A stretch of DNA of 64,000 nucleotides from positions 992,001-1,056,000 of the forward strand of contig BQFW01000001.1 in the NCBI GenBank assembly GCA_020891255.1, given 5' to 3'. This document shows positions 51,771 through 60,476 of the stretch, piece after piece (positions within the stretch are counted from its first letter, which is position 1; each line of letters starts with the position of its first letter). The notes beneath the pieces are model-generated. The model made no database searches and was not told the origin of the DNA. It worked only from the letters and a program-made list of their open reading frames with translations. The position numbers and the translations under genes were made by a program. This stretch comes from Entomortierella parvispora E1425 (lineage: Eukaryota > Fungi > Mortierellomycota).

Positions 51771-54700
51771 CTATGGCCTTGGTGACAGAGCATCTACTTC
51801 CGAGGAGTTCGTGCTTCCACCGCCTGCTGGAGATAGAGCTGTGGTATCTCCATACTCCAGCTCGCTCGGCAGGTAAACAAAGGACGTGGGATCGTTTCGA
51901 GGATGCTCTGCTGGCAGGTTCACATGCATAAAGAACGTGTCATGAATCATTTGGCCACGAAACGACTCCAGAACAGCTTCCTCTGACATCAAAGTCGACC
52001 CCCCAGGCGAACTGACTACAGATGAGGACGAAATTGGGCCAGTAGGTTCTGGGGCTGATCCATGATAAAGGCCAGGGTGGGCGATCTTGTTATCCAAATT
52101 GTTCTTGCTAATAGAAGAGACCAGCTGTTGAGTTGAGTGCTGACTTGGATACATATCCAGCATATGGCGAGAAAGGGATGGCTGATTTTGAAACAAACTT
52201 GTGAGGTGTATTTGTGGAGATACAACAGTCGACGGGCCACCGGAATTCGAGGACGTGGGAGAAAGGGGTGCATTATCCAAAAGAGGCGGTGTCAAATGAG
52301 AGTTGGTCAATGACGAAATGGGTGATTTCGGTGACAGCAACGCGGTCTGGCTTCTGGGAACAGATGTTAAGAAGACGTCCTCCGCCAAGTTAGGCGCTGC
52401 GCAGAAAGCAGATTTGCTGTTATCACCCGTTGATTCAGTGTTTGAGAGTACTTTCGAAGCAGCGGTCGAAAAAAGAGCCTCGTGTCTTGGATCAAAAACG
52501 ATCGATTGAATGTCAATCATTTCCTCTCCGGCTCCAAACAGTTCGTTTCCAGATAATTGGTCGTAAGACGTCTGACACAATGCAGAGACGTCCGGTCGGG
52601 TATCCGCTATCCACGACGCATAAGCGCGCTGGTCTTGATGCATAGAATGCGCTTGTAGTTGTTGTTGAGACTGACCTGTTTGTAACAATTGCTGGTCCAC
52701 TGTGGTCGATGGAGGAGGGGTAAATGATGGTTGGCCTTGAAATAAGACCGCGCCCTGGAACGTAGGTATTGACAGGAAGGAGTTTGCTCTCTGAGTGTAA
52801 TTCTGGTTGGACTGAGGCTGTGGAGTGATATTATGACTCCCTGAAAGATACTGCTGTTGTTGATCTTGCTGTTCTTGCTGCTGCTGCTGCTGCTGCTGTT
52901 GCCGCTGCTGGATTGGCAGTGCGAATTGAGACTTTTGATGAGGTTGCTCTTGCTGCCGTTGTCGCCGCCGTTGCTCTTCATGATGTTGCTGACGCAGAAT
53001 TTGGATATGCTGCTGGTGATGTTGTTGTTGAATAATATTCGACTTCATTAGTTGGATATGGGCTTGCTGCTGCTGCAGAAGCTGTGATTGATTTAGAAGC
53101 TGATGTTGATGATTAATCTGCAGATTCTCCTGGCTTCCGTGTGTTTGGGGAAAGCTTGAAGAAGCTTGGCTCTGCAAAGGCTGATTGAGATGCGGCTGTA
53201 AATACTGTTGCTCATATTGTGCCTGTGCTTGCTGCCGTTGTGTAAATGCCCACTGTTGTTGCTGCTGTTGCAAAAGCTGTTGCTGTTGCAGCTGCCGTAT
53301 TTGGTCTTTCGCCAAAAGCTTTGCCTGCAAAAGCTGGCGGTGCTTTACTGCTGCCGCTTCCTTGGCCAAATCTAGACTTGATTTTTGTTGCGCTAAAGCG
53401 GCGCGACAAGACGCAAGCAAGTCTGCAACATCTGACTTTTTAGATCGGTTGATTCTGAAGAACTGGAGGTTCTCAACTTGCTCCACATAGTCCATCGATT
53501 TTTGCAAATCTCGCCTTGACTCCTTCGCCAGAGTTGAATCAATGGTGCATTTTGAGTTGCGTAAGTGAATCCGGATTGCAAAGTTCAAAGCATAGCGAGC
53601 TGGCGTGTTCTGCTCGAACGTCCGTGGTGCATCCTTAAGGAGAATCCCCGCAATCTTTGTGATCTCTTTCGCAGCCTGGGTGCAGTATCCTTGCGAGTCA
53701 GGGAGATTACCTTGTTGCGGCGACTGAAATGCTTCGGCACTCTTTGGATTGGGTAGATATGGGTGGTGCAGCAAAATGATAAGTGCATAGCAGAGAAGTT
53801 GCGCCCCTGCGGCAAGTGCCTTAACATCAGAAGTGATGGAACCTTTTGTTGGCACAAGGTCAAAGACCTTTGGCATTTGTTCCTGCCAAGCGACTAGGTC
53901 CTTGTCGAGCCGATCAAGATTTTCCAGCAGGACAGACTTTGAGGGAGGGGGACGCATCAAAACTAACTTTGAATTTTTGCGAATCTTGCGACAAATTTGC
54001 CACCCACGGACACAGTGCAGCATATATTGGTCAGAGTAGTTTTCCGTCTCTGGACCGAGATCGCCAGGTACTATCATGTCAACATGGATCTCTTCATCGT
54101 TAATTAGGGTCGGTTTTCCACCAATTGCGGAGGATGTTGAGTCGAAGACAAAGCAGCACCAGAATACTCGGGCTCTGTATGCACGCATGAACTTGTTCGT
54201 AGAGTCATCCATCTTTGAGTGTAATCCCATGTCTAAGGCCATGGTGATGGCTTGGCTGATGAAAGCGGACCGTTGCGCTGGAGATTTGTGGCCGATTGCA
54301 AAGAGGAGCAAGGACTGAACAGTGCAAAGGTGTGTAGTTAAGTATTTCTTCTCCAAAAGCGCTACCATCGGAACGAACAAAGGTGAGTATTAAGTCTCGC
54401 CCAGCATTGTGCATTGTTATACAAATAGCTTCCGTGCAGGTGTTACCTTGACCACGCTGGAAAAAAATCTCGCCAACTGTGCCTTCGTCACTCTTGTCCT
54501 TACGCAATGGAAGGGTGTTGGTTGAAAACATAGATCCGCAATAGTAAACCGCGTTGCAGAGTAGGAGGCAGTGCGGAATGTGAATATTCTCTTCGCACAC
54601 ACGTAGAACTTCACGCTGAACCATCGGAAGAAGTATGTAGTGATTCTAATCATGACATGGATGATGAAATTCTGCACTGTGTAAGCCTTTCGTACCGGTC

Positions 54701-56647: not shown

Positions 56648-58129
56648 ATGGCATCGCCTTTGGTGTCATCTGCAGTTTTCTTCCCCCCTACGGCCTCTGC
56701 CCTCCATCAGAAGCGACGTAAGGCTAAGAAGCATGCACTCCGAGTTCCTCGACCCAAGAACTGTTTTATGCTCTATCGAACTCACGTCATGCCGATGATT
56801 ATGGTCGAGCTTGGTAACCTAAACAACCGAGTCATCTCGCAGATCGCAGCAGAACGTTGGAATGCAGAGTCCGAACCAGTCAAGGCTTGGTACCGACTAA
56901 TGGCGAAGATGGGTAAAGAGGAGCATGCCATCAACCACCCAGGATACAGATACGCACCAAACAAAAAACTACTCGACTACTCTTCCCAGGAACCATATCG
57001 AGATGATGGTGAAGATAACGAGGCGGGTGTACCATGCAGAACGATCGGATATAGTGAGCTCAAAGACATGATCAGCGATGACGATGATGACAACGATCCA
57101 ACCTATAGAAGCAGGAAATCAACCAAGAAGTACATGAGCGCACGAAAGGGGGTGCTCAACAGCAGACGCCAGAACGACTCTCGACTCTCCATCGCCTTTT
57201 CTCAAAAGCCAAATGTGCGGGGACGCCGCAAGATAGCAGGCAAGGATCTCGGACCTAGCCATGCACCCGCGGACCCCGATTTTCAATCGGTCCAGAGTCC
57301 AATTGATGCTTCAACATTACTGGGGCCACAGGCAATTGTGGAGCCAGGCGGAGGAATGTACAGCAGCACGTATTATCATGTTGGCTATGACCATGGGTCA
57401 ACACTCACATCGTTAAATCCTATTGAAGACTACCGAATCGTGGCAGACCCACAGCAACTATATCCGCTACAAGCACAGTGCTGTCGCGTGTTGCAACACC
57501 AGGCATTTCAGCAGTTGGAGTCACAGCCACCCCATCTGCATCATGATGCTCTTCTGGATAGTTGTCGCAATTTTCACATTCTTCCGGGGGGAGAGCATGA
57601 CCTACATCTTTTGCACCAGCAGCGATATCATGAAAACTGCCAAGATTGGAATCCGCCCTTCTACCTGCACTCCTCCAGACGGCACTCGTTTTATGATGTT
57701 AATCCCGAGGCAAATGCCAGTGTGGAGACACTTGTTGACCCTAGTGATCATTGGTTGACCCACCGATACTATGATTCGATGACCGAGTATCCAGGGCACT
57801 TCGACTCCGAATTGTCAGAGGAGAAGGACGTACCATCGCTGCCAATGGACATAGTCGTTGATGCAGTACATGACCCACATTCCACTCTCGCTCAGCTGAG
57901 TAGCGTCATCTACGGCGTTGGCCAAAACGAGGACAAGTCCAAGGTAGCCATGACGTCCAGTTCTCATTTTACAAGGGTTGGACAAGAGGGCCACTCGATT
58001 AAATACGACATTGACAAGGCACAACCTCCTATCGATGGGACCACTGATCAGCAATTTTTTATCCAGCCTGCGAGTCTGACATACCTGTCGTTCACTGAAG
58101 CTAGTCATTGTGAAAGTGCAACAAAATAA
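56648..58129 (+). CDS. MATA-type HMG-box transcription factor (493 aa, single exon)
   Basis: RVPRPKNCFMLYR...NRVISQIAAERWNAESEPVKAWY...EHAINHPGYRYAP at ~56741-56960. Confidence 0.9.
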   Translation: MASPLVSSAVFFPPTASALHQKRRKAKKHALRVPRPKNCFMLYRTHVMPMIMVELGNLNNRVISQIAAERWNAESEPVKAWYRLMAKMGKEEHAINHPGYRYAPNKKLLDYSSQEPYRDDGEDNEAGVPCRTIGYSELKDMISDDDDDNDPTYRSRKSTKKYMSARKGVLNSRRQNDSRLSIAFSQKPNVRGRRKIAGKDLGPSHAPADPDFQSVQSPIDASTLLGPQAIVEPGGGMYSSTYYHVGYDHGSTLTSLNPIEDYRIVADPQQLYPLQAQCCRVLQHQAFQQLESQPPHLHHDALLDSCRNFHILPGGEHDLHLLHQQRYHENCQDWNPPFYLHSSRRHSFYDVNPEANASVETLVDPSDHWLTHRYYDSMTEYPGHFDSELSEEKDVPSLPMDIVVDAVHDPHSTLAQLSSVIYGVGQNEDKSKVAMTSSSHFTRVGQEGHSIKYDIDKAQPPIDGTTDQQFFIQPASLTYLSFTEASHCESATK

Positions 58130-59047: not shown

Positions 59048-59056
59048 GTATAAAAG
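59048..59056 (+). promoter_or_regulatory. Putative TATA box of the secreted His1 gene
   Basis: TATAAAA ~270 bp upstream of ATG 59324, followed by a pyrimidine-rich leader. Confidence 0.5.
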
Positions 59057-59323: not shown

Positions 59324-60476
59324 ATGTTCTTCCGTACAACTATCATTGCCTCCGCCACGTTGGCCCTGATTGCTTCCATGGCGGACGCTCATTCTTGGGC
59401 CGACTGCGTTGACTGGCGCTTCAATAACCCCAGCAAGCCAGGTATGCATCCAATATCCCTGGATTTGACCTACCCACTCTTTGGGGGGTGGATCCCTGGA
59501 CAAACTGCTCTGTGTGTCATTTTACCCGAAGTGTCTTTGGAAGAAGACCAGGAAATTTAAAAAAAAAAAAAAAAGAGCATCCCAAATTGGACGCCTGCCC
59601 AGAGCGGACTGTGTAACATTACCCCATCTTCATTTCATGGCTGCCCAACATATTCTTCCTTTTCCGAATGTCTGTGTCCAGGGAAGAGCCACGAGGTTGA
59701 GTGAAACCTGGCTTACTTTTTTCCGGCCCTTGTTCCTGCCCCTGCCCCTGCCCCTTTCTGGGACACTTGCATCTGTCTCCTCACTTGGAAGCGGTCTCAT
59801 ATTAGAAAGTCATCTAATAGTACTATAATTTTTCTTTGTAGATTATTCTGCAAAGGGTGGCAAGTGCTTCGGGTGGGCTCGTCAGTACCCTGTCAACTCT
59901 GGCATCGCATTTGGCGGCCTGGACGACGCTTCACCTAATCGCCACTACCAGCAAGGCAAAGACATGACTCCTTGCTCCGACGGTAAACATGGCGTTGAGC
60001 CTGGTGCAGACGAGACTCGACAGAGCCCCATCTCCAAAGCGTATGGTGGAAAGTGGGGTACCATGGCCACCGTCAAAGCTGGCGACCAGATGTGTATCCG
60101 CTGGCCAGCTAAAAACCACGCTGTCAAGGATGAAGTGGATCGCGGCGTCTTCATTAATATGCCTCAAACTATCTTGACTAAGGACCCCACCCAGTCTGGC
60201 TTCCTGAAGGCCAACATCGCCAAGCTTCCTTATAAGGGTTGCAACTTTACAAGTAATTCAGATACAACCCCTTGCGGTGGCTGCTTCACTGTCCCTGCCA
60301 GCCTTACCACAGGCACTTATGTGGTCCAATGGCGTTGGGAATTGAACCCAGGCGAGTTCTACACCTCCTGCTGGGACCTGGGCGTAACTGGCGCTGGCGG
60401 TGACAGTTCAACCACAGGCGGCAAAGCCATTGGAGGATCAACTTCAGTTTTTGCTGAGCTCGCAGAGGATGATTAA
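59324..60476 (+). CDS. Secreted 250-aa protein with His at the predicted mature N-terminus (LPMO-like). Exons 59324-59441 and 59842-60476
   Basis: Signal peptide MFFRTT...ADA/HSW. A GTATGC...TAG intron (400 nt) restores the frame. WPAKNH, QWRW and FYTSCWD motifs, 8 Cys. Confidence 0.85.

Follow-up and report, generated by a model that had tools for sequence, protein, structure and literature searches.

EMPS_00272 of Entomortierella parvispora, a candidate for a new family of secreted LPMO-like proteins with a predicted histidine brace

Lytic polysaccharide monooxygenases (LPMOs) of the family AA11 are secreted, chitin-active fungal proteins, and structures are available for several of them (AoAA11, 4mah/4mai; AfAA11B, 9exj; AfAA11A, 7p3u). 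According to one description of the Mortierellomycotina, they are saprotrophs that degrade chitin, and AA11 and chitin-binding modules are enriched in their secretomes (PMC9391592). The mean number of AA11 genes in Mortierellomycota is 9.2, and in one survey, none of the AA9 assignments in Mortierellomycota genomes held up when checked (PMC11134847), the genome of Entomortierella parvispora not having been searched for AA9. A paper on AA10 of Ustilago reported fungal AA10 genes in some Ustilaginomycetes and did not mention Mortierella. The reports of AA14, AA15 and AA16, as cited in the literature, each brought a new substrate or biological role to the LPMOs, and a paper of 2026 lists AA18 among the LPMO families as well. 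Here, we describe a gene of E. parvispora E1425 that encodes an LPMO-like protein, EMPS_00272. It is located on the plus strand at positions 59324-60476 of a 64-kb window, the whole stretch of DNA that was analyzed (contig BQFW01000001.1, 992,001 to 1,056,000), and its two exons encode a protein of 250 amino acids. With a probability of about 60%, we regard it as a copper protein of the histidine-brace type that probably acts oxidatively on polysaccharides and has a second sphere of the AA11-like Glu-x-Tyr kind.

The first 22 residues (59324-59389, plus strand) form a predicted signal peptide with Arg4, a hydrophobic core, and Ala-Asp-Ala at positions -3 to -1. Its removal would leave His23 (codon 59390-59392) as residue 1 of the mature protein, and this residue is proposed to be a ligand of the histidine brace with both its amino terminus and its imidazole. 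The cleavage between residues 22 and 23 was assigned from the -3/-1 rule and from conservation. The motif HS[WYF]-x-x-C was present in 113 of 150 cluster representatives, its His was found at the median position 22, and the residues in front of it were small (VEA, AEA, ADA, VSA). This location after small residues agrees with a cleaved signal peptide. The proposed second copper ligand is His132 in the sequence WPAKNH (codon 60117-60119), and a motif of the type WP-x-K-N-H occurred in 124 of the 150 representatives. The third element is Glu211-Phe212-Tyr213 (60354-60362), for which an axial Tyr and a second-sphere Glu of the AA11 Glu-x-Tyr type are proposed. An earlier, sequence-only reading of this DNA had described a 22-residue signal peptide ending with ADA and followed by His23, a second His in WPAKNH, a QWRW strand, an FYTSCWD strand, eight Cys, and a short Gly/Ser tail. 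All of these features were found, the second His exactly at the given codon and the eight Cys in the mature part, and the HS[WYF] pattern of the representatives agrees with the predicted cleavage.

The conservation of these residues was analyzed with two alignments, one of 66 Mortierellomycota homologues (A1) and one of 58 sequences spanning the wider range of the family (A2). In A1, His23, Ser24, His74, His132, Glu211, Tyr213, Asp218, and all eight Cys were invariant. The conservation of the first His and of the KNH His, which the sequence-only reading had singled out for checking, extended to the wider family, because A2 contained His132 in 58 of 58 and His23 in 57 of 58 sequences. Tyr213 was present in 56 sequences of A2 and replaced by Phe in the remaining two, and position 211 was E, Q, or D in 49 of 58. 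A role of His74 (motif NRHYQQ) as copper ligand was rejected, because this residue is invariant in the Mortierellomycota, yet only 20 of the 58 wider relatives have a His at this position. The motifs of the family can be written as HS[WFY]-x-x-C, WP-x-K-N-H, and W-x-W...E-x-Y-x-x-C-x-D. The features by which an LPMO is recognized in sequence, i.e. a (predicted) mature N-terminal His, a second conserved His, and a Tyr or Phe on the penultimate strand, are all present.

An AlphaFold2 model was built from A1 and had a mean predicted local distance difference test score (pLDDT) of 87 and a predicted template modelling score of 0.81. The pLDDT values exceeded 90 in most of the core and were low in the signal peptide and in the tail, and the loop region of about residues 34-115 was long and well-ordered. 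His132 is located four residues past the strand 122-128. Two fold searches were performed. With Foldseek, the listed matches in the PDB with E < 1e-3 were nearly all LPMOs (AA10, AA9, AA11, AA16), with a best E value of 6e-6. In a second search, which did not rely on Foldseek and covered 48,161 representative chains, ranks 1-23 were all LPMOs or LPMO-like proteins, including fusolin, X325 (Z 8.2), AA14 (8.2), and AA16 (7.2). As LPMOs were leading in both searches, it follows that the fold of EMPS_00272 is, as modelled, the LPMO beta-sandwich. This is what the sequence-only reading had expected, and ranks 1-23 speak against a fold other than a beta-sandwich.

Pairwise alignments with VIA-align gave a Z score of 11.9 for the AA10 structure 4oy7, with a root-mean-square deviation (rmsd) of 3.0 A over 155 residues. 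The scores were 11.0 for AA15 (5msz), 10.7 for AA13 (4opb), about 10 (9.9-10.2) for AA11, with an rmsd of about 3 A over 132-141 residues, and 8.4-9.9 for AA9. In nearly every case, the alignment began with residue 23 of the model facing residue 1 of the mature enzyme. The best matches were thus AA10, AA15, and AA13 (Z 10.7-11.9, with alignments of 145-158 residues that start at residue 1), but their sequence identities to EMPS_00272 were only 10-16%, and no usable sequence match was obtained. In addition, the axial residue is Tyr in EMPS_00272, whereas it is usually Phe in AA10 and AA15 (PMC13353379). In the structural comparison, the known LPMO families are roughly equidistant from EMPS_00272.

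Generic beta-sandwich proteins, among them the effector NIS1, were also found with Z scores of 5-7, and therefore a secreted Ig-like beta-sandwich that has no metal site, e.g. an adhesin or an effector-like protein, has to be considered. However, generic Ig-like folds followed only after the LPMO block of the 48,161 chains, at Z 7.2 and below, and these generic scores are well below those of the LPMOs. Moreover, hundreds of clusters have an invariant N-terminal His together with a second His and an axial Tyr where LPMOs have them, which would be hard to explain for a protein devoid of a metal site. We thus regard this explanation as highly improbable. That the protein has an LPMO fold and binds copper by a histidine brace is very probable.

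The comparison with known families at the sequence level did not yield a clear assignment. Pfam contained no family that scored above its cut-off for EMPS_00272. The AA9 model (PF03443) matched residues 112-228 with 19.6-20.3 bits (E 6e-4 to 9e-4), compared to a gathering cut-off of 27.8, and it matched 16 of the 66 homologues, all below threshold (best E 4.3e-5). For LPMO_10 (PF03067), no match to EMPS_00272 was found at E values up to 10, and three of the 66 homologues were matched below threshold (best E 0.0044); the name by which UniProt refers to this domain is also attached to the AA16 structure 7ze9. BIM1-like (PF20238) yielded no Pfam match.

All PDB sequences were screened at E values up to 10 with two profiles of the family, one for the Mortierellomycota and one for the wider range. 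The Mortierellomycota profile reached AA11 alone (4mah, E 0.0016). With the wider profile, the E values were 3e-7 to 1e-5 for AA11, 0.04-0.9 for AA9, 0.4 for AA16, and 1.9 for AA15. No match named AA13, AA14, AA17, or X325 was obtained in these searches, the PDB copy used presumably including an AA17 structure. Matches to glutaminase-asparaginase structures (E 0.02-0.08) were rejected as short chance matches around P-A-K-x-H-x-V, and Egh16/TrsA, a proposed LPMO family, was judged to be unrelated to EMPS_00272.

The matches to LPMO structures were confined to about the last 50 residues (45-50 for AA11), and full-length similarity to AA11 catalytic domains was not found. Within the AA11 match, the W-x-W, the Glu-x-Tyr, and a Cys line up with G-N-R-E-M-Y-M-N-C, and Tyr213 falls on the E-M-Y of 4mah and 9exj. 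Counted along the alignment, its counterpart is residue 140 of 4mah, which we take to be the axial Tyr of AoAA11. The last two strands of EMPS_00272 and AA11 are therefore alike in sequence (E 3e-7), whereas the first approximately 170 residues of EMPS_00272 have no sequence similarity to AA11. The mature N-terminus is HSW-x-DC in contrast to the HVGLLHP type of AA11, the second His is part of WPAKNH instead of HGGG-x-CQW, and EMPS_00272 lacks an X278-type or other appended module. AA9 shares the axial Tyr, and the W-P-x-x-x-H strand of EMPS_00272 resembles the AA9 strand with the second His; in a weak alignment, His132 is opposite the WTH histidine of the AA9 structure 5ufv. However, EMPS_00272 has a Glu where AA9 has the Gln of its His-Gln-Tyr motif (PMC11137697). 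By its sequence, the EMPS_00272 family thus fits none of the LPMO families for which Pfam has a model or a structure has been solved. The sequence-only reading, which had held the HSW start and the AKNH motif to be foreign to the known signatures, was right in this respect.

AA11 is nevertheless the sole significant sequence link to solved structures, and the family might be a divergent AA11 subgroup of CAZy, or CAZy might already list it in one of the AA families. In both cases, a gap in the coverage of Pfam and PDB would be responsible for the results. Most database records of the family are named 'hypothetical protein', but some UniRef clusters have automatically been named 'Chitin-binding type-4 domain-containing protein' or 'Lytic polysaccharide monooxygenase', and the clusters of EMPS_00272 itself in the protein atlas are named likewise. 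The LPMO likeness has therefore already been flagged by machine. In addition, one study with dbCAN counted 2-14 AA11 genes in each of the Mortierellomycota genomes (PMC11134847 supplement). These published counts were rejected as a clue to the dbCAN class of EMPS_00272, because the genome contains at least seven canonical AA11-like genes, which could explain them alone. Furthermore, the AA11 link leaves the N-terminal two thirds of the protein, including the second-His motif, unaligned, and the full-length alignment of the family is not to AA11 but to DUF7492. Inclusion in AA11 or in another existing CAZy family is thus rather unlikely.

DUF7492 (PF24320), an uncharacterized Pfam family, is represented in the genome by a genuine member on contig 3 (G000, L001 1204-1851, minus strand), which scores 30.6 bits and thus exceeds the cut-off of 27 bits. 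Its mature N-terminus is HSWLDC, it has W-E-A-N-G-H at the second His, which aligns with His132, and E-E-Y-S-T-C at the Tyr. An hhalign comparison of the family profile with this protein extended over the full length, with a probability of 99.4% and an E value of 3e-21, and BLASTP of EMPS_00272 gave 22% identity at E 1e-7. The DUF7492 model itself did not match EMPS_00272 at E values up to 1. It weakly matched 43 of the 66 homologues, all below the cut-off of 27 bits (paralogues 9.8-24.4 bits), and a few distant relatives of EMPS_00272 had scores of 27.6-35.9 bits. The homology is thus clear, and the sequences indicate that the EMPS_00272 family is a sister group of Pfam DUF7492 or a branch that is not covered by it. 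The two differ in that EMPS_00272 has the longer loop region (about 34-115) and eight Cys, and DUF7492 has fewer. As the alignment with DUF7492 includes the full length and the link to AA11 includes only the last two strands, we treat the proteins as a family of their own that is sister to DUF7492. A DUF7492 cluster in the protein atlas is mostly from Zoopagomycota. It is possible, although tentative, that EMPS_00272 and DUF7492 together form an unrecognized eukaryotic LPMO family of Mortierellomycota and other zygomycetes, Amoebozoa, and marine protists, with a catalytic copper brace and a substrate or role outside those of AA9-AA17. It might, for example, act at the cell surface and remodel the wall or matrix of the organism itself.

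The genome of E. parvispora contains about seven copies of the EMPS_00272 family, including two pairs that are close together on contigs 2 and 14. The canonical AA11-like genes, with the mature N-terminus HVGLLHP and the second-His motif HGGGHCQW, are located on contigs 2, 4, 12, and 15 (e.g. C2:3479881-3480567 (L005), C2:3574665, C12:1824228, C12:1828998, C2:3467647, C4:1794488, and C15:2160687). About eight further, weaker AA11-like matches were found, and some of the AA11-like genes are clustered. The comparison of an AA11-like gene of the genome with the wider family profile by hhalign was confined to 45 columns (93%, E 2.7e-7), and the BLASTP alignment of such a gene with EMPS_00272 was confined to 34 residues. 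Together with about three DUF7492 genes (C3:445650-446240, C15:1273299, C2:2991495), the about seven HSW-family genes and the at least seven AA11-like genes make up a large LPMO-like set of this fungus.

Next to the genome of E. parvispora, the range of the family was analyzed. The first search yielded 149 relatives, and the named ones were nearly all from Mortierellomycota genera. When 1.84 billion cluster representatives were searched with a profile, 531 clusters were retrieved at E values up to 1e-3 and 267 at E values up to 1e-10. Named distant relatives were found in the dictyostelid Heterostelium album (PPL_06211) and in the amoeba Paradermamoeba levis, and further ones in MMETSP marine protist transcriptomes and in metagenomes. 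The sequence-only reading had proposed an undescribed LPMO-like family of an early-diverging fungus. The location outside the families with a structure or a Pfam model stood, but the restriction to such a fungus did not, because the range extends to Amoebozoa, marine protists, and metagenomes. Many of the distant relatives are longer and contain Thr/Pro-rich linkers, TSP1 and EGF modules, transmembrane helices, or ends resembling a glycosylphosphatidylinositol (GPI) signal. The metagenomic sequences P0145, P0136, P0177, P0180, and P0205 comprise the catalytic domain with added modules, and P0145 has Pfam matches to TSP1 and EGF. A transmembrane helix with a cytoplasmic tail also occurs among them, and one tail, judged by eye, resembles a WW domain. 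The sequences of the fused or anchored relatives suggest cell-surface forms in protists. In the protein atlas, P0001, the database record of EMPS_00272, had a near cluster (score 0.90) of a 336-residue 'hypothetical protein', which is 83% viral and mostly from Nucleocytoviricota. Judged by proximity in feature space alone, giant viruses may carry related LPMO-like genes.

The function that we propose for EMPS_00272 follows the established LPMO mechanism. The protein is predicted to be a secreted, disulfide-rich LPMO beta-sandwich of about 24 kDa, and cleavage by signal peptidase would expose His23 as residue 1. The amino group and the imidazole of His23 would then bind one copper ion together with His132, Tyr213 would be located below the metal in the axial position, and Glu211 would be in the second sphere as in AA11. 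After reduction from Cu(II) to Cu(I), the copper would react with H2O2 or O2, and C1 or C4 of an insoluble polysaccharide chain would be oxidized, which would break the glycosidic chain. The substrate chain would be bound to a flat face, which would largely be formed by the loop region of about residues 34-115. The conserved Glu-x-Tyr matches the arrangement of AA11 and therefore argues for catalysis and against metal binding as the only role. The odds lean slightly towards a true polysaccharide oxidase.

Several points weigh against this view. In the Foldseek comparison of the model with known LPMOs, the template modelling scores were only 0.3-0.45. Secretion and an N-terminal His do not by themselves make a protein a copper binder or an enzyme; DUF4198 and DUF6702, which are proteins with an N-terminal His, bind Ni for metal capture (PMC12537917). 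X325 binds Cu and has no LPMO activity, and AA16 members mainly produce H2O2 (PMC13353379). The GPI-like or transmembrane anchors of many distant relatives are suited for copper handling or wall remodelling at the surface equally well as for litter degradation. The neighbors of EMPS_00272, an HMG-box gene and a fungal transcription factor gene, offer no hint to its function.

Some of these points would fit a histidine-brace copper protein that does not cleave polysaccharides and instead is a scavenger or chaperone at the surface, like X325/Bim1, or a helper that produces H2O2, like some AA16. X325 and EMPS_00272 have the LPMO-like fold and the N-terminal His in common, LaX325 was matched at Z 8.2, and the GPI-like tails or the transmembrane helix in P0136, P0145, P0177, P0180, and P0205 recall the location of X325 proteins at the cell surface. 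LPMO-like folds that have no LPMO activity and metal-capture proteins with an N-terminal His are both documented in the literature (PMC13353379; PMC12537917). However, the match to X325 was weaker than those to the catalytic families AA10, AA15, AA13, and AA11 (Z 10-12), EMPS_00272 matched no BIM1-like model, and its conserved Glu-x-Tyr second sphere is the arrangement of the AA11 structures. In addition, EMPS_00272 itself has no anchor. Its C-terminal tail (residues 223-250; 60390-60473, plus strand) is Gly/Ser-rich, has a low model confidence (pLDDT 52-75), and ends with the acidic motif GGSTSVFAELAEDD (residues 237-250; 60432-60473, plus strand), which includes a short predicted helix at residues 243-247. 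The end of the tail contains no hydrophobic stretch and is therefore not a GPI signal. Taken together, we regard a purely copper-handling or H2O2-producing protein as rather unlikely in comparison to the oxidative enzyme. Endings similar to GGSTSVFAELAEDD were found in 28 of the 66 homologues from several genera, and other paralogues end directly after the catalytic domain. As a short linear motif, the acidic ending may serve in binding, dimerization, or self-inhibition.

Chitin or chitosan, be it of prey, of litter, or of the own fungal wall, would be the first guess for the substrate of an oxidative EMPS_00272, because the Mortierellomycota are chitinolytic and the nearest structurally known relatives, the AA11 enzymes, are chitin-active. 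The guess is weakened by the presence of the family in organisms that do not have chitin walls, and the relatives in amoebae and marine protists as well as the anchored forms also call for caution. Chitin as substrate is therefore doubtful.

In summary, the EMPS_00272 family is uncharacterized, although it has been flagged by machine. A literature search found no paper on DUF7492. In the literature on Mortierella together with LPMO or AA11, which was covered in part, no description of the EMPS_00272 family was found, and a paper on signal strapping treats only bacterial Ni and Cu binders. We consider it a good candidate for an additional LPMO family, with all three proposed copper-site residues cleanly conserved over a wide eukaryotic range. 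If true, the Mortierellomycota, which have been described as chitinolytic soil saprotrophs and root endophytes (PMC9391592), would have a second, unrecognized set of oxidative enzymes. The proposal is directly testable, as it concerns one small secreted protein.

The gene model was derived from separate translations and searches of the two exons, and the full-length analyses were performed with the database record P0001 (NCBI 'hypothetical protein EMPS_00272', E. parvispora, 250 amino acids), which was found in a word search with a 100% match over exon 2. Exon 1 (59324-59441, plus strand) begins with the ATG at 59324 and encodes the signal peptide, 17 mature residues, and the first base of codon 40; its translation is identical to residues 1-39 of P0001. 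It is followed by an intron of 400 nt in phase 1 (59442-59841, plus strand), which has the borders GT (at 59442) and AG and was delimited from the sequence and the comparison with P0001. Exon 2 (59842-60476, plus strand) encodes the remaining catalytic domain and the C-terminal tail and ends with the TAA stop codon at 60474-60476. The splicing to a protein of 250 residues that had been proposed from the sequence was thus borne out by exon translations identical to EMPS_00272. The splice is further supported by an intron-less paralogue (G000:C14:459652-460305), the frame of which is uninterrupted across the region of the exon junction, and by homologues that align over the junction without a break. 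A paralogue on contig 12 carries an intron at the equal position.

For the paralogue EMPS_08912 (P0041; G000:C12:1741100-1742500, L006), which has its intron at the same position as the EMPS_00272 gene, the database model starts with MVEAHSW and lacks a signal peptide. The genome contains an in-frame Met further upstream (MVVPTTIVATLLASLALFSTMVEA, followed by HSW), and the annotated start of EMPS_08912 is probably too far downstream.

Two neighbors of the EMPS_00272 gene in the window are an open reading frame (ORF) for a protein with a fungal-specific transcription factor domain (51771-54380, minus strand) and an ORF for an HMG-box protein (56648-58129, plus strand). A functional gene cluster around EMPS_00272 was rejected, because these two neighbors show no obvious link to the LPMO-like gene and the other ORFs had no Pfam match. 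Direct reading of the upstream region revealed a TATA-box-like element, TATAAAAG (59049-59056, plus strand), about 270 nt upstream of the ATG, which is followed by a CT-rich leader. The intron contains a run of about 17 A residues (about 59559-59575) and a short repeat of the CCCCTG type (about 59736-59753).

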